Below are positions 3,189-47,935 of a stretch of 64,000 bases of DNA, piece after piece. The stretch is taken from positions 124,001 through 188,000 of the forward strand of contig OZ025671.1 of assembly GCA_964019335.1 (NCBI GenBank), in the 5' to 3' direction. The first letter of the stretch is position 1. Every line of letters starts with the position of its first letter. The notes beneath the pieces are model-generated. The model had not been told where the DNA came from and made no database searches. It worked only from the letters and a program-made list of their open reading frames with translations. The translations under genes and the position numbers were made by a program. The stretch comes from Diplonema japonicum. Taxonomy: Eukaryota; Protista; Euglenozoa: Diplonemea.

Positions 3189-3291
3189 ATGAGTTAAAGG
3201 AGGCCGGTGTTGGCGGCGCCCTGCACAAGAACTGTCTACTTGATTACAGGGGGCGCGCCGCGGCCGAGTTGTAGCTTCTTCTGCGTTCCGC
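3189..3291 (-). mobile_element. 5'-truncated copy (3' tail) of the ribozyme retroposon
   Basis: Matches 47590-47667; flanked by direct repeat AAAATTAT (3181-3188 and 3292-3299). Confidence 0.85.
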
Positions 3292-7592: not shown

Positions 7593-7693
7593 AATGAGAT
7601 AAAAGGAGGCCAGTGTTGGTGGCGCTCTGCACAGTGCTGTCTACTTGATTACAGGGGGCGCTCCGAGTAACCAAGATTCTGCGCTGTGCAGTT
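7593..7693 (-). mobile_element. truncated, internally deleted copy of the ribozyme retroposon
   Basis: Tail plus gtctacttgattacagggggcgc plus gtaaccaagattctg...gtgcagttt, shared with the 14.7 kb and/or 47.6 kb copies. Confidence 0.8.
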
Positions 7694-8367
7694 TAGAAAA
7701 AGAAGCTGGCGACAATAGTCTACTTTAGTCTTTGTTGACAAAATGACAAATATTTTTTTTCTTCCGAGAGTGGCAATGTTGACTCGATGGTGAAGGGTAT
7801 GCCTACTAGGTGCACACAATAGGTTGGTTCCGCTTCCGGACTTTTCTTTTTCTTTTTTTTTTCTTTGTGAGAAAACCAAGCAAAGCTCAGCATATTAGGA
7901 AGCGATCGATATTCTTTCCCCCCCCCTTTTTTTTTCCCTCTTCACTTCATTCCGCTCTTTTTTTAAAAAAAGAAAATCTATATTTCATCCGTTTCGGGCT
8001 TGGCAGTCCCTTCTCTCTTTTTTAAAAGCAGACACACCCTTCTGGCTTGCCAAGCCCAAGTTCAAGAACTCCTTTTTATTTTTTCCCTCTTTTTATTTTT
8101 TTCTCTTTCTTCCCAGCAAAGCATAGCCATAGCGGTGCGCCCTTTTTTTCTTCTTCTTTTCTTCCCCCGGGCATGTGGGGCCTGTACACCATTTTTTTTT
8201 CAATTCTTGATTAACTTACCAAAAGAAAGGAAAGTCACGTGACAATTTTGTTATGTGTAGTGCTGCTAGGGGGGGGGGGGGGGAGATGGGTGGTTCTTTT
8301 TTTTTTTTTTAAAGCGGGTGATGGGGGAAAATCATGAGGCCAGAATACACAGAAATTAAGTGAAGTC

Positions 8368-12438: not shown

Positions 12439-13833
12439 CCATCTACCAACGAGCGTCTTTATAAAGACGATTTGAAAAAAAATCTTTTGCGCAAAGGGCT
12501 TTCAATGCAATACAGCCCGGCCACTTCTCGCATCCGGGGTCCTGCGCGGAAAATATGAAAAATATAAACTAAATGCTGCCCTAACTTAACAAGAAAAAGA
12601 AAAAAGAAAAAAAAACGCCAGCCCAAATTTACCCTTAAAAATCACTTCAAAAAAGGGTGCCCAGAAAGAGGCCGGAAGAGGACATTATGAGTGATGGTAG
12701 CACTGATGGCTCATCCCTATTATGCAATTTTGGTACGGACAGTGATTCTGATACGAATTCGACCGATTCCGAGTCACAGCAGGGTGATTGGACGGCAAAG
12801 CCGGAGCAGTTGGAAGGCATCCGGTTTCGTGAAGATCGGAATCCTTGCGGACCCTGTTTTGACATCAGAGGCTCAACGCCATTCCATATATTCTCCCAAA
12901 TGCTCGCCCCAAACGTTATTTGGGTCATAATTTCGAACAATGTGGCAAATGCGGCTAAAAAAGGTGTTTCCCTGCCCAAGTCAAATTTGACGTGTCGGCC
13001 AAAAGAGAATGAAAGCCGGAAAGGACATCCCACTCCCCACCAAGTGCATATTTACAACACCGCAATGGGCGGAACCGACGCTGGGTGATGCTGTGACAAA
13101 ACGCCATAAACGCACCCTTATGACTTCGAAGTGGCCCCTGAAAGTATTTTCGTACTTGTTAGATAAATCTCTGGCAAATGCCCGGTTTGTTTGGAAAGAA
13201 GCATTGCCCCCCAACACCCTGAGTACGAACGACAGTGGATTCACACCTTTCAAAGAGGCAGTCATCGAAGGGCTACTAGGGAGGCTGCCCAAACAACAGC
13301 TAAAGTCAACTACAGAGCAGGCTGCCCCAATACCCCCCGAAACACAGAACGAGTGCCCTGAGACCCCAATGCGCCGCGACAGTACCTTCTGGGACCATTT
13401 CCCCGAAAAAGTAGCGCAACGTGCGGTGCAAGCATTGCAAGTCGAAAAACCCCTATTTCAGTGTTCAGCCCGCTTGGTACAACTTTGCGTGACTCCGTGC
13501 TTCAAAGACTACCACCTTGCCGGGGATACCCCCCAGAAACCCCTCTCGGGGCAAAAAAGAAGTCCCTGGGGCACGTACGAACCGCGTCAAGAAGGCCTTA
13601 AATAGGTTTTTATAGAATTTTACAGTCGATTTTTTTTGACTTGTTTTTTGTACCCCCTCTCGGGCACTTCAGGAACGATATTTTTGACAATGCTGTGGGC
13701 ACCCTCTCTCTAGAATTGGGACATCTGGAGGCATTTCCGGGGGCATACAGCCCCGGCGTTGCGCTAGAATAGTTTTTTTTGAAGTTTTGAAAATTTACCC
13801 CCTGGTGGGCAAAAATGGTCCGTTGGTAGATGG
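12439..13833 (+). mobile_element. piggyBac transposon, internally deleted
   Basis: TTAA|CCATCTACCAACG ... CGTTGGTAGATGG|TTAA; transposase remnants inside. Confidence 0.95.
12688..13605 (+). pseudogene. piggyBac transposase pseudogene
   Basis: TPFHIFSQML, YNTAMGGTD, KWPLKVFSYLLD..LANA and C-terminal LCVTPCFKDYH; frameshift near 13085; most of the catalytic core is missing. Confidence 0.9.
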
Positions 13834-14685
13834 TTAACAAAAAAAAAAAAAAAAAAAAAAAAAACTCATAGTAAAAGACAACCCCACTTGAGGACAGCCT
13901 CTTTGTGGTGTGAGTTCCTATCTATTAATGCTCCCCTTCTGGAGCATAGCCTTCGTTCCTATTGTCGCCTTTAAAGCTTTTTCGTAGTCTCGACACGCGT
14001 TCTTTCTTGTATGAATAAAAAAAAAAAACTATTGGGCTGTGAACCTAAAGGTACATAATTAACGCAACTCCCAATTGATCACAGGAGCTGGGGGTGCGTT
14101 GTTTTTGCTGTGACTATCTTCTTCTTTTTTTTTTTGGGATTTCTATTCCCTCCCCCTCGTCTCCCTCTCTAGCTGTTACAAGAGGAAAGAGGGGGAGGGG
14201 GAGGGAGGGGGGATGATAATTCTTTTTTTTTTGAAATCTTCTTTGCTTTCCACCCCCACTCCCCCCCCCGGCAGCGCAATGAAGAAAGGAAAATATGAAC
14301 TTAAAAAAATGAACAAAAGCAACAGACAGGCAAAAAGAAATCATCGACAGCTCGCAAAGGGATTTAAAATAAGGGGGAAGGGGGGGGGGGGGGTGAAGAT
14401 AGTGGGAAGCAGGAGGAAGATGGAAAAAAAAGTGGATCTTGCTTTATTCATTGGAAGTCTTCTCCCCGCAATGGGGATAGCAAAGTGTGGGGGGGTTTTG
14501 TGAAAAGGGTTCTTCTTTCTTCTTTTTTTTATTTCTAAATGATTTTCTCTTTTTCTTTCTTCCCCTCAAAAAAAAATCGACCCCCCCCCCCCCAATTCAA
14601 CATCGCCTTTTCTCTCTCTCTCTCTCCCCCCATGCTTTTGTACGTTCTTCCCATGCTACCGTTTTCCTGACAAACAAAAAACACG

Positions 14686-14930
14686 ATGATTCAAAGGAAG
14701 CCGGTGGGGGCACCCTGCACAAGCGTGTCCTTAATGCGTGCGGTGTGCACAACCCCAGCCGGGGCGCCCCGGGTAACCAAGATTCTGAGCCCGTGTAGTT
14801 TGCTGCCTGTTCGCCACCCAGAGCACCTGCTTCTTCCACTTGGGCGCTACCGGTGATGACCGACGGGGAGGTCAACAGCGAACAACACATCTGATGTACT
14901 TCTTTATATTTCCATGTTATCCCCACCACC
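14686..14930 (-). mobile_element. HDV-ribozyme-headed non-coding retroposon, copy A (5S-linked)
   Basis: Colinear with 47560-47893; shares the 3' tail with the 3189 and 7385 fragments. Confidence 0.85.
14798..14930 (-). ncRNA. HDV-like self-cleaving ribozyme
   Basis: P1 GGUGGUG/CAUCACC; P3 ACC/GGU; L3 UCCCCGUC; P1.1 CC/GG; P4 CGCCCA..UGGGUG; J4/2 GCGAA; imperfect P2 GCUGUUG/CAGGCAGC. Confidence 0.85.
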
Positions 14931-14937
14931 TGTTTAG

Positions 14938-15055
14938 AGGATACAGCACCAGGGCTTCCCACGTGATCACTCACCGCAGTACTAACCTGGCCTGCTGGTG
15001 CTTAACTTCCCAAATCAGGCGGGATGGGTGCATTCACCAGAGTATGGCCGTATCC
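14938..15055 (-). rRNA. 5S rRNA sequence (gene or retroposon head)
   Basis: GGATACGGCCATACT...GAAGTTAAGC...GGTTAGTACT...GTGGGAAGCCCTGGTGCTGTATCCT; 118 nt; terminal helix pairs; no oligo-T terminator follows. Confidence 0.95.
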
Positions 15056-15166
15056 TGAAACATATTTTTCTTTTTTTTTTTTTCTTCTTATTAACTCGCA
15101 TTTTCTTTTTTCTTTTTTCTTTTTTTAAATTCAGTTTTTTCTTCTTTTTTTTTTCCTTTTTTCTTC

Positions 15167-15979
15167 TTACGGTGGGGGTGGCTGGCTGTCCTTCCTACCT
15201 CCACCAGGTGTGATCCTCTGGCGCATAGGAACATGCATCAAAACCGTATCACCAAACTGATTCACCCGATCAGCCAGAGACTGCTTATGAGCATGAACAT
15301 GAAGAAGGGGACAGACTGGATCTGTACAGGAGTTCTGCTGAAAAGGAGCGCATCTTTGCGTGTTCGCAGGGGCCCTCCATTGCTCTTGACAGACCCTGCA
15401 CCTCAACATGATCTCACCCCGTTTAATCCTTACATTGTCCCACTCATTGTGAGTGCATGGTTTCGTGTCTGCCACTCTTCTCTGTCTCACTATCTGCTTC
15501 ATCTCTGTGGAGTCATCGGGTAGCAATGGAGGAGCACTGCAAATGGAAGCGTCGCTTTCATACCCATGCTGATCCTCCATGAAGGCTTCCTCCACTGAGT
15601 GTGCTGGGCTGTATAGCGCCAGGCGTGCGATTTTTCCTTTTGTTGTGAACTCGACCGAGATGATCTCTGTGCCGTCGTACCTCTTGCCGGTCCGCTTCAC
15701 AACGCTGCTGAGGTGTAGCTTGCAATACCCCACGGATCCCATGACTACGATGTCGGCTACCTCGTACCGTTTGAAGGTAAACGCATCACGGAAAGCAGAG
15801 AAGAATGCCACCGCACCCTTGTACCCTTTGTGGCTTCCCGCGTAAGGTATGTTGCTAAGAGGTGTCACCGACGCTGTCTCGATATGCACGTTTGATGCAA
15901 GGTATGAGGTCACACTGGGGACACCCTTGGAGAGCTCTGTGAGGAGGAGGAGTAGCATGCGACTGGGGTCTTCTTGAGG

Positions 15980-35413: not shown

Positions 35414-37885
35414 TCACAGCTTGGCCTGTCCAGAGCAGATCCTTTCGAAGGCGTTCTCATTGAGTTCGGAGTAGGTGCCAGCGGGGATGTCGAAGAACCT
35501 TTAATATTATTATTTTTAAGAATTTCCATACCACATCTTGTCGCTGCATTTTTTGGGGTCAAAGCTCTCCTTCTTGTACTGCACCTTCATGTGCTTGAAG
35601 GTGCCTGTCGAGTCCATCTGAGCGAGGAAACGCACGAACATGGGAACCTTTTAACGTTAAAAAACCTTTTTGTCTCTCCATACCGAGTACATGGGCAGGT
35701 TGGCTCTGCAGTAGGTCGCGAATTTCCTAGGGTCAATCGGGACGTTGGGGTCCTGGTTGATGGCAACCATGCAAGCCCTGCCGTCCTTCCCCGGCACCTC
35801 AACCCCGTACACAGAGGCTTCAATGATACCAGGGAAGGTGGAGAGCACCTCGGACACCTCCATAGTGGAGACGTTCTCACCCTTCCATCGGAACTGTGGT
35901 GTTGCTTTTAAAAAAAAGAAAGAAAAAAAGTTGTCTCGATTTTAGTGGTGCCATGCAGTATGTGACACAGCAGCCACCCTTGTGAAACTTCGCCCCGAAG
36001 CCTCCCAAGTCCCCTGTGGTCCCGTAGAAAGTAAAAGTGGAGAGGTAAAGAAAGCTTGGAAATTGAAATAGGGAGAGGGGCCACAGAAGCAATTAAACAC
36101 CAACTGGAGTATGCTGTGGGAGATTGCTTCACTGGCCTGCCCACCTCCTTGTTCGATGTAATGGGATAAGGGACTCTCCGTTGAGGGCGATGCCAACTGG
36201 CGCCACGCGTAGGGTGGGCTCTCCACCCCCGTCCAGGTTTCCCCACGTGTACGGCTTTAGAACGAGAGTTTCCCTTTCGCTTGTGTCTCTCCAAACCACA
36301 ATTACCAGGAACCACCACAGGGAGGTTGGAAACATTGGTCCCCAAAAAAAGTCACATACAGTGTCGCCGATCCTGTCTACGAAGTAGGTGTACCCGTTGG
36401 TCTTCCTCAGAAGGTCTCCTGTTCTGAAGTAGGAGTCGCCCTTCACGAACACATCCCTCATGATCTTCTTCTCGGTCGCTTCCTTGTTGGTGTACCCTTC
36501 GAAGTCAGGGGCCGAACCAGTGGCCGTCTTGACCATCTTGATAGGGCTGATGAGCTCACCTGGCTGGTTGTCTTCGACAATTTCGCAGAAGCCTGCCTTG
36601 TTCCTGATGGGCATTTCGTTCTCAACGTCAAACTTCACAATGTACATAGGGCGTGCCGCCTGAAGGATCGCGCCGGTCTTCCCAACAGCACCCTGGCCCT
36701 CGTAGTTCCTGCAGAAGTTGAAGAGGAACGCGTTCCCCTCTGTGGCACCGTAGAACTCCCCGATCTCAGGAATGTTGTTCCTCCTCTGGAAGGTGTCCCA
36801 GATCTCAGGCCTCAGCCCGTTGCCAATGGCGATTCTAAGACGGTGCTTCTTCTCCTCCGGCTTGGGATCCGCGGCGAGGAGGTACCTGCACAGCTCACCA
36901 ATGTACTGCATGACAGTGGCCTTGTACCTGTTAAGATTGCTACCCAGTTTTGTACATACTTGATGCAGTCGCTCCAGTGCCTGGAGGCGGAGAACTTCTT
37001 CCTGATGATGTAAGTGCACCCCTTGTTCATCATGGACATGACACCAAGGTTAGCGGCTGTGTGGTAGAGGGGCATGCCTGAGCCGTAGATGACATCGGTG
37101 GCCTGGCAGCCGAAGGCGTTGACGATGATGGCGTAGTTGTTCATCTTCATGTGGCTGATCTTGCAGGCCTTGGGAAGCCCGGTGGTACCGCTGGTGTAGA
37201 TGTATCCGAAGGCATGCCCTGCGTCGAGGAGGTGCCCACGCCTCTCCTTGGCGTTAACCTTTTTGGTGGGGAAGGTCGCGATCTGCTGCAGGAAGTTGAT
37301 GCCTCCGTCAACCGAGGGCGCGTCGCCGACGATGGCGAAGGTCTTGACGCCGTTCTCACGGAAGCCCTTCTCCACGTTGTGGACGTTCTCAGAGATGTCG
37401 CTGTGGTAGATGATGCCGACGGCGCTGGCAATCTGAGTGCTGTGCAGGAGGGCCTTGCCCTTGATGTTCGAGTTGATCAACGCGATCTCAACACCCGCCT
37501 TGGCAAGACCCAACCAGGTCACAATGTAAATGGGATCGTTTTCCATGTACAACGCCACGCACTGCCCGGGCTTCCACAACGTGCACGCCCAGTTGGCAAC
37601 CTGGTTCGACTGCTCCTCCACCTGCTGGAAGGTGAGCGTGGCACCGGTGTCCGCGCTGATCAGGGCGACCTTGGTCTTGGACACCTCCTTCCTCGTCTTG
37701 GCCCACATGTCAACGATGCTCCACCCGGGGGTCTTGAAGTTCTTGTTCGCCTCCAAGTACACGCTGGCCAGCCTCGAGATCGCACCAAGGTCGTGCGACA
37801 GGTGGTACTTCCCGTCGACCCATTTCCAGCTCGCGAATGACGCAATGAGCGCCGCAAGGAGCTTGCCTTCAGTCGGAATGTCCAT
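35414..37885 (-). CDS. very-long-chain acyl-CoA synthetase / fatty acid transport protein (SLC27 family), ending in AKL
   Basis: [23 protein letters not shown]|[10 protein letters not shown]; introns 36928-36959, 35894-36359, 35648-35683 and 35499-35531. Confidence 0.95.
35932..36343 (-). mobile_element. ribozyme-headed retroposon inserted in FATP intron 2
   Basis: TSD ACTTTTTTT on the minus strand (36344-36352 and 35923-35931); 3' tail gtcacatactgca..gcacc shared with the 47.57 kb and 57.75 kb copies. Confidence 0.85.
36268..36343 (-). ncRNA. compact HDV-like self-cleaving ribozyme (76 nt)
   Basis: P1 GGGGACC/GGUUCCU with G1-U wobble; P2 GUUUCC/GGAAAC; P3 ACC/GGU; L3 UCCCUGU; P1.1 GG; P4 UUGUG..CACAA; J4/2 GCGAAA. 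Confidence 0.9.
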
Positions 37886-47559: not shown

Positions 47560-47892
47560 GCCTTTTAAGGGTGCCTGCAGTATGTGGCAGGGCGCCCTGC
47601 ACAAGTATCGTCTACTTGATTACAGGGGGCGCGCCTCGGCCTAGTTGTAGCTTCTTCTGCGTTCCGCGTCGTGTCCTTCATACGTGCGGTGTGCAACTCA
47701 ACCCCAGCCATGGCGCCCCTGGTAACCAAGATTCGGAGCCCGTGCAGTTTGCTGCCCGTTCGTCACCCTGAGCATCTGCGATACGTTCTTCCACTCGGGC
47801 GCTACCGGTGATGACCGACGTGGAGGTCAACAGCGAACAACACATCTGATGTACTTCTTTATATTGCCATATATCTGTGTTATCCCCACCAC

Positions 47893-47893
<1 letters not shown>
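47560..47893 (-). mobile_element. HDV-ribozyme-headed retroposon, copy B (no 5S)
   Basis: Colinear with 14686-14930; starts at ribozyme G1; flanked by taaaaaaaa (47551-47559 and 47894-47902, low complexity). Confidence 0.88.
47747..47893 (-). ncRNA. HDV-like self-cleaving ribozyme
   Basis: P1 GGUGGUG/CAUCACC; ACC-UCCACGUC-GGU; GG; P4 CGCCCGAGU..GCUCAGGGUG; ACGAA; P2; J1/2 forms an extra hairpin. Confidence 0.85.

Positions 47894-47935
<42 letters not shown>

Follow-up and report, generated by a model that had tools for sequence, protein, structure and literature searches.

A probable chimeric retrocopy joining 5S rRNA to a SINE headed by a predicted HDV-like ribozyme in Diplonema japonicum

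Within a 64,000-nt stretch of the Diplonema japonicum genome assembly (GCA_964019335.1, contig OZ025671.1, positions 124,001 to 188,000 of the forward strand; hereafter the window), a full-length 5S ribosomal RNA (rRNA) sequence is joined to a short interspersed element (SINE) that begins with a predicted self-cleaving ribozyme of the hepatitis delta virus (HDV) type. We think it probable that this composite is a chimeric retrocopy, in which 5S RNA became joined to a ribozyme-headed SINE belonging to a system of APE-type long interspersed elements (LINEs) with poly(T) tails. The 5S sequence is most likely a passenger acquired during reverse transcription, not a promoter that evolved to be shed. 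This reading builds on features observed in the genome: the anatomy of the composite, the relations of its family, the conserved and covarying fold, and the range of chimeras.

The segment 14686-15055, used as a query against the whole genome (62.5 Mb, 132 contigs), yielded 1,303 first-look candidates and, among them, 77 scored matches, most of which begin at query position 124-126 (window 14932-14930). A consensus built from 20 full copies is 318 nt long. By BLAST, the window copy shares 98% identity with it over positions 1-212 and 97.6% over 276-316; consensus positions ~213-275 are missing (breakpoint near 14724), and the 3′ end is mutated, reading CGTG where the consensus has CGAG. Headless copies typically follow an upstream T-run of 8-37 nt, usually then CA, and open with GGTGGTG; copies end in ...AAATCATCGAG followed by a T-run of 6-49 nt. 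They are dispersed in T tracts and do not occupy one fixed rRNA-gene site. The family comprises two subfamilies, the older of which has a 6-nt insert in the loop of helix P4 (see below), and a headless copy of the older type elsewhere in the window (47590..47894, minus strand) starts A-GGTGGTG immediately behind a run of over 40 Ts. No internal A and B boxes for RNA polymerase III (Pol III) were seen in the SINE by eye, and a search of a phage collection gave no match. Two other window segments, 3189-3291 and 7602-7694 (both minus strand), are 76-85% identical to the 3′ third of the SINE and are probably old 5′-truncated copies.

The flanks of the SINE are ambiguous by themselves, since a T tail could equally be an A tail on the reverse strand, and we therefore settled the orientation through its LINE partner. 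One LINE copy (L006, minus strand) contains the C-terminus of ORF2, encoded by an open frame of over 383 aa whose direction is that of the SINE; this frame stops ~45 nt before a terminal ...GAAATTTATCAAA and (T)20, leaving a short 3′ untranslated region. A protein search with the frame returned 107 genome matches with the 5′-truncation pattern typical of LINEs; full frames reach ~1,375 aa, and the subfamilies stand at 99, 75, 64, 54 and 45% identity. The full-length copy L078 encodes an ORF1 protein of 800 aa with an OTU domain and an ORF2 protein of 1,362 aa with Exo_endo_phos and RVT_1 domains. The poly(T) tail is part of the insert, because a LINE copy on C28 that lies outside any T-run still has (T)9. 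Moreover, the end of the 75% LINE subfamily, GAAATTTTATCGAG plus Tn, resembles that of the SINE. Judged by sequence, the SINE is a non-autonomous partner of this APE-type LINE family with sense-strand poly(T) tails.

Other assignments were considered and rejected. A reverse orientation, in which the GGTGG end would bear a poly(A) tail, conflicts with the sense of LINE ORF2, which is that of the T tail, and with 5S +1, which abuts its junction in sense; the same observations, together with the 5′-truncation pattern, dispose of a Helitron/Helentron-like insertion between Ts. LINE family A (L073, G000:C15:120000-129999), set aside as a partner on account of its poly(A)/TAA tails, tandem arrangement and lack of relation to the SINE, is a separate APE-type family with an ORF1 of 950 aa, an ORF2 of 1,383 aa and almost no 5′ untranslated region. 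Its members lie head to tail, end in A-rich/TAA tails and cluster on a few contigs (C13, C51, C52 and C61). In the poly(T)-tailed family, at least 40 places (for example, L014:1136-1234, minus strand) match the final 99-104 nt of the 75% subfamily at 100% identity, which points to very recent activity of this subfamily.

The first 129 nt of the window SINE copy are predicted to adopt the nested double pseudoknot of HDV-like ribozymes, with cleavage predicted between A14931 and G14930 (Table 1). The descriptor used to search for this fold asks for a P1 that starts at G, a 3-bp P3, at least 4 bp in P4 and 5 bp in P2, a J4/2 reading C-N-R-A, and an L3 that starts with U and pairs two of its letters with the two letters after P1′. 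It matches the window at 14930, at 47893 (the second SINE copy) and at 36343, compared with a single match in 30 dinucleotide shuffles of the window (0.033 per shuffled window versus three in the real one), and in 265 kb of other loci it finds SINE copies only. In its loosest form, the descriptor gives 0.67 background matches per 128 kb, or ~5e-6 at one fixed position, and nevertheless matches the defined 5′ nucleotide of each family. This form gives one extra match in the window, at 15841 (minus strand) inside an open reading frame (ORF), a number compatible with the 0.67 per window expected by chance. The match at 36343 (36268-36343, minus strand) is a compact structure, with P1 GGGGACC/GGTTCCT and J4/2 CGAA, that lies directly after a T7 run; its sequence is unrelated to the SINE, and another T-tract element may begin with it.

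The strongest argument for the fold comes from the LINEs. In each of subfamilies a-d, the sequence parses as an HDV-like fold from the first G after (T)n-N-A, and in these elements the ribozyme overlaps the start of ORF1. The SINE has P1 GGUGGUG/CAUCACC, P2 GCUGUU/GGCAGC and P3 ACC/GGU; LINE a and b (L078, L079) have P1 GGGAAC/GUUCCU, P2 GGUGGA/UCCACC and P3 GCC/GGC; LINE c (L081) has P1 GGGGGUU/AGCCCCU, P2 GGUGGG/CCCACC and P3 GCC/GGC; and LINE d (L082) has P1 GGGGUUC/GAACCCC, P2 GGAGC/GCUCC and P3 ACC/GGU. The helices were parsed directly because the MAFFT alignments (A1 and A2) place gaps inside P1 and P2. In this parse of our own, two-sided, compensatory changes affect 10 of the 14 core pairs, with standard pairs in every sequence at every position. 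The helices covary across five sequences that show no other alignment, and what stays constant is G+1, the U-C-C of L3, the GG of P1.1 and the C of J4/2. All six sequences compared (young and old SINE, LINE a-d) keep L3 as UCCNCG(N)N, P1.1 as GG and J4/2 as GCGAA or GCAAA. The LINEs and the SINE would thus both begin with an HDV-like ribozyme, whose catalytic activity we infer from this architecture.

The 5S part of the composite matches the Rfam model RF00001 over model positions 1-120 with 93.5 bits, compared with 102.6 bits for the best 5S loci in the genome. The assembly carries 22 5S-like loci spread over many contigs. At canonical loci the 3′ end reads ...CCT-CYAAAC-TTTT, whereas in the window the trailer CTAAAC runs through A14931 into GGTGGTG with no T-run between them, and no run of four or more Ts occurs in this copy from 5S +1 down to 14682. 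Relative to canonical genes, the window 5S has a private 1-nt deletion around position 31-34, which presumably falls outside the internal control region. The upstream flank of the 5S ends in CA, two letters often seen before retroposed 5′ ends in this genome. At another locus (L032, G000:C17:472899-473100), a canonical 5S gene with its TTTT terminator is followed directly by what, on inspection by eye, resembles a tRNA; the pair, if confirmed, would be a Pol III gene cluster as in some kinetoplastids.

An earlier note on this DNA, made from the letters alone, had already described the full-length 5S sequence without an oligo-T terminator and an HDV-type double pseudoknot starting at G14930. 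Both were recovered here, the helices and C14813 among them, and the comparison with the LINEs makes the ribozyme prediction much stronger. The note's link to a mobile family also holds, as copies begin at or no more than two nucleotides from the predicted cleavage site; its ~110-nt body, by contrast, gives way to a 318-nt SINE of which the window holds an internally deleted copy.

Among the 77 scored matches and 1,303 candidates, only five SINE copies carry a 5S head: the window copy and one each on C86, C23, C91 and C73. Three belong to the older subfamily and two to the younger. Their heads have private indels and substitutions with no shared derived mutation, and their junctions differ (CTAAAC-A in the window; CCAAAC-CA, CCAAA-A, CTAAA-A and CCAAAC-TTTTT in the others), using both natural trailer variants of the canonical 5S genes. 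The composite on C86 (L002/L043) is complete in length, with 99% identity to the young consensus, and the private differences of L002 occur in no sampled headless copy. In L005, the trailer and five Ts are joined straight to G+1 without an extra nucleotide. Other partners are found as well: at L036 a 5S runs into the terminal 52 nt of an old-type SINE (E 7e-14) and at L039 into the terminal ~50 nt of a LINE, L037 and L038 are fusions with two other repeats, and at L049:1441-1605 (G000:C85:29143-29307) the 3′ half of a 5S with its trailer is followed by a single A and the 5′ part of a second 5S.

On the 5′ side of the 5S, the composites resemble retroposition junctions, with a T-run or CA abutting 5S +1. 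A candidate target-site duplication brackets the whole window composite, and in the other composites any duplication would be hidden by the flanking T-runs. The 5S head is not an integral, inherited part of the SINE family. Instead, because the heads are private, the junctions differ, both subfamilies are involved and 5S is also fused to truncated tails, other repeats and 5S itself, we regard the composites as chimeras of the U6/L1 type. They show a small RNA in sense at the 5′ end, a retroelement 3′ part with its tail, variable junctions, truncated partners and repeated, independent formation. No second allele or empty site was found in the assembly, where the search showed only another 650-nt repeat.

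Table 1 Features of the 5S-SINE composite and of the second SINE copy in the window
Feature	Position	Strand	Basis or remark
Upstream flank TGTTTCA, candidate target-site duplication	15056..15062	-	Compared with GTTTGTCA; imperfect match, 2-nt indel
5S rRNA copy, full length, 1-nt deletion	14938..15055	-	Rfam RF00001
5S 3′ trailer CTAAAC	14932..14937	-	Trailer in all 5S loci, normally followed by TTTT
Junction nucleotide A, position -1 of predicted cut	14931	-	A at -1 also before LINE, SINE and several retroposed 5S 5′ ends
Predicted HDV-like self-cleaving ribozyme	14802..14930	-	Descriptor match versus shuffles; same architecture in four LINE subfamilies
Ribozyme P1	14930-14924 / 14858-14852	-	
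Ribozyme J1/2		-	44 nt
Ribozyme P2	14879-14874 / 14807-14802	-	
Ribozyme P3	14872-14870 / 14861-14859	-	3 bp
Ribozyme L3, UCCCCGUC	14869-14862	-	
Ribozyme P1.1, GG	14851-14850	-	
Ribozyme P4	14846-14841 / 14820-14815	-	
Ribozyme J4/2, GCGAACA	14814-14808	-	Candidate catalytic C14813
Rest of SINE body, ends ATCATCGTG (consensus ATCATCGAG)	14682..14801	-	BLAST versus 318-nt consensus
T-rich 3′ tail TTTTTTGTTTG	14671..14681	-	Last letters overlap candidate downstream duplication; T-run at the end of every family member
Candidate downstream target-site duplication GTTTGTCA	14668..14675	-	Compared with TGTTTCA; imperfect match
Headless SINE copy, older subfamily	47590..47894	-	88.5% to consensus; descriptor match at 47893

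Beside the composite, at 13200-13865 (plus strand), the window holds a repeat of ~640-665 nt that is present in at least 40 copies at 89-95% identity.

The setting in which these elements sit suggests how their RNA could be made. The genome is kinetoplastid-like in having a spliced leader and one-directional genes, and the host appears to transcribe its genes polycistronically. A 22-mer of the spliced leader occurs 214 times in the genome, compared with 0 for the reversed control, at dispersed positions that include many near contig ends. All large ORFs in the window lie on one strand, and among 26 SINE loci with a nearby open frame of at least 200 aa, the longest neighbouring ORF is on the strand of the SINE in 22 (and opposite in 4). 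Insertion into coding-strand T tracts places the elements in sense within long RNA polymerase II (Pol II) units. In this position the ribozyme would have an obvious role and a private promoter would be unnecessary, as Pol II co-transcription followed by self-cleavage would be enough to produce the SINE RNA. One LINE copy carries such a leader: at L080:688-709 (G000:C27:631088-631109), a kinetoplastid-type spliced leader, ...CAGTTTCTGTACTTTATTG, is joined to LINE sequence GGAACAC from 710, at an AG that straddles the ribozyme start. Because the last G of the leader restores P1 in this copy, the ribozyme could in principle remove both cap and leader.

We propose that sense-oriented copies are transcribed within long Pol II transcripts, from which the ribozyme would cut the element RNA free at G+1, and that the LINE RNAs, which would end in oligo(U), integrate mostly into coding-strand T tracts. 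To form the composite, a SINE RNA would have received, precisely at its 5′ end, a 5S RNA with its natural CUAAAC trailer in head-to-tail order, and both would then have been inserted as one unit. The joining step was probably one of two events: the reverse transcriptase, having reached the 5′ end of the SINE RNA, could switch to a 5S RNA at its 3′ end, or the two RNAs could be linked by an RNA ligase ahead of reverse transcription. 5S RNA, being made by Pol III, ends in U. Because it shares this ending with the LINE RNA, its capture may be favoured.

Several observations weigh against this account. The descriptor was relaxed after the candidates had been seen (in the J4/2 offset and to a 6-bp P1) so as to cover all members; the Rfam HDV-family models gave no match at E<=10 on the SINE or on LINE b-d (L079, L081 and L082, the LINE loci scanned, LINE a locus L078 being left out); and the nested minimum-energy fold is unremarkable, with z = +0.48. 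G1 of the SINE pairs with C where the usual partner is U, and P2 contains two G-U pairs. The target-site duplication of the window composite is imperfect, and so is suggestive only. Finally, ~73% of SINE copies carry CA before G+1, which is not expected of a cleaved RNA; the remaining copies have A alone or nothing. LINE copies that are 99% identical all have A at -1 but vary at -2 (C, G or T), and several retroposed 5S copies likewise have A or CA before their 5′ G, although 5S RNA cannot encode such letters. For these reasons we read the A or CA as a junction addition or, as in some insertions in which CA belongs to the duplication (L078, L026, L022), as target letters; either would be compatible with an RNA that starts at G+1. 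Alternatively, transcription initiation may place the RNA start at -2/-1, or uncleaved templates may be used. The missing Rfam match, the lack of a thermodynamic signal and the CA kept upstream of the predicted cut would all suit a conserved fold that does not cleave itself, such as a translation or packaging element, or a chance match. We rate this as very unlikely: the constant residues are the ones that define catalysis, the helices covary, and the chance rate at a fixed position is ~5e-6. Long J1/2 inserts and pseudoknots are poorly modelled in the Rfam covariance models.

If the ribozyme is accepted, the role of the 5S must still be decided. The earlier note took the terminator-less 5S for the Pol III promoter of the SINE, with the ribozyme removing the 5S from the transcript and the headed copies acting as source genes. 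Its three parts are present as described, and Pol III read-through from the window copy is physically possible because no T4 run precedes the tail; the 1-nt deletion in the 5S, the full-length C86 composite with its near-identity to the young consensus, and the headless copies that start at or next to the predicted cut can be read in the same direction. An evolved cassette is nonetheless highly improbable in our judgement. The genome-wide count goes against it, with so few headed copies among the ~1,300 candidates, and so do the differing junctions and the private head mutations, both trailer variants occurring in both SINE subfamilies; the private differences of L002 are shared by no sampled headless copy. 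In addition, 5S is equally fused to ribozyme-less fragments and unrelated repeats, the partner LINEs carry the same ribozyme without any 5S, and the sense bias in gene clusters offers a Pol II source of RNA. Absence of T4 was discarded as a Pol III signature: in 318 nt it is expected by chance (P = 0.73), and the six T4 runs of the LINE match its composition. A cassette would be at best a side effect of an accidental fusion, and the window copy is also internally deleted and mutated at its 3′ end. A bolder version, which we regard as a long shot, is that headed copies, once made, do serve as Pol III-driven source genes with a promoter-shedding ribozyme, and that the oligo(U)-priming LINE system recombines with Pol III transcripts systematically. 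If so, oligo(U)-priming LINEs and ribozyme-made 5′-OH ends would together create new promoter-bearing SINE precursors.

Two further accounts concern how the junction arose. In one, a T-tract-seeking SINE inserted at the DNA level into the terminator T-run of an existing 5S gene or pseudogene. The family does target T-runs, 5S loci do end in TTTT, and L005 keeps five Ts between 5S and SINE, yet four of the five composites keep no junction T, where headless copies keep 8-37 upstream Ts; the retroposition-like 5′ side of the 5S and the candidate duplication around the whole unit likewise speak for a single insertion, and we see little chance that two events were involved. The other account keeps the single insertion and replaces the jump of the reverse transcriptase with RNA ligation. 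HDV-type cleavage leaves a 5′-OH end, which makes the idea attractive: an RtcB-type ligase could join such an end to a 2′,3′-cyclic phosphate on the 5S, and the product would then be reverse transcribed. The direct junction in L005 fits this scheme, and the route is established for U6/L1 chimeras (PMC6789731). Against it stand the extra A or CA at most junctions, the 5S fusions to internal SINE and LINE positions, where no ribozyme end exists, and the cyclic-phosphate end of the 5S, which is only assumed. We hold ligation to be unlikely, and continue to favour a chimeric retrocopy made during reverse transcription.

More broadly, these findings would add a canonical HDV-type ribozyme to an unusual LINE/SINE system, with poly(T) tails, T-tract targeting and an OTU-containing ORF1, in a kinetoplastid-like genome. 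They suggest a simple logic, in which an element that lands in the polypyrimidine tracts of one-directional gene clusters could obtain transcription for free and then leave the transcript by self-excision or trans-splicing. With Pol III RNAs that end in U and a ligatable, ribozyme-made 5′-OH, the system could also serve as a natural test of how chimeras made by reverse transcriptase form. Moreover, the 5S junctions place the 5′ end of the SINE RNA within two nucleotides, and may thus give indirect in vivo support, drawn from genomic sequence, to the predicted cleavage site.

Among known systems, the composite is best filed as a combination of two kinds, a ribozyme-headed pair of a non-LTR (long terminal repeat) element and its SINE, and a small-RNA chimera made by a LINE; what is unusual is the poly(T)-tailed setting. 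HDV-like ribozymes process R2 and L1Tc (PMC3774820, PMC3185411). As in R2, RTE/Baggins and L1Tc/NARTc, the nested double pseudoknot here lies at the extreme 5′ end and would release the element RNA from a longer co-transcript, and as in R2 SIDEs and NARTc, a non-autonomous derivative shares the ribozyme (PMC3774820, PMC3414825, PMC3185411). Large J1/2 inserts are also known in HDV-like ribozymes (PMC4908430). Unlike R2, RTE and L1Tc, however, the elements described here target T tracts, end in sense-strand poly(T) and bear an OTU domain in ORF1. Their core is of the canonical HDV/R2 type (L3 UCCNCG, GGCGAA), whereas trypanosomatid Pr77 ribozymes have been called clearly divergent from those of R2 and HDV (PMC4035085). 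The situation also differs from R2 co-transcription, in that copies are dispersed in T tracts and 5S is adjacent in just five of the ~1,300 candidates.

The fusion itself has its closest parallels in mammalian U6/L1 and 5S rRNA/L1 chimeras and in the tripartite chimeras of Magnaporthe, in which a full-length Pol III RNA at the 5′ end precedes a retroelement 3′ part in the same orientation. In these, too, the junctions are variable, the partner is sometimes truncated and the parts were inserted together (PMC4476161, PMC2104539, PMC6789731). U6/L1 chimeras form by template switching or RtcB ligation (PMC4476161, PMC6789731), the same two routes weighed above. In contrast to these chimeras, the tail here is of T and not A, the Pol III RNA ends in U like the LINE, and the 5′ end of the partner was probably made by a ribozyme. 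SINE3 elements likewise place a 5S sequence before a LINE-dependent body, with a 5S-like head that is found in every copy and evolves with the family. In D. japonicum, by contrast, the head is restricted to a handful of copies, is nearly identical to functional 5S and was acquired more than once.
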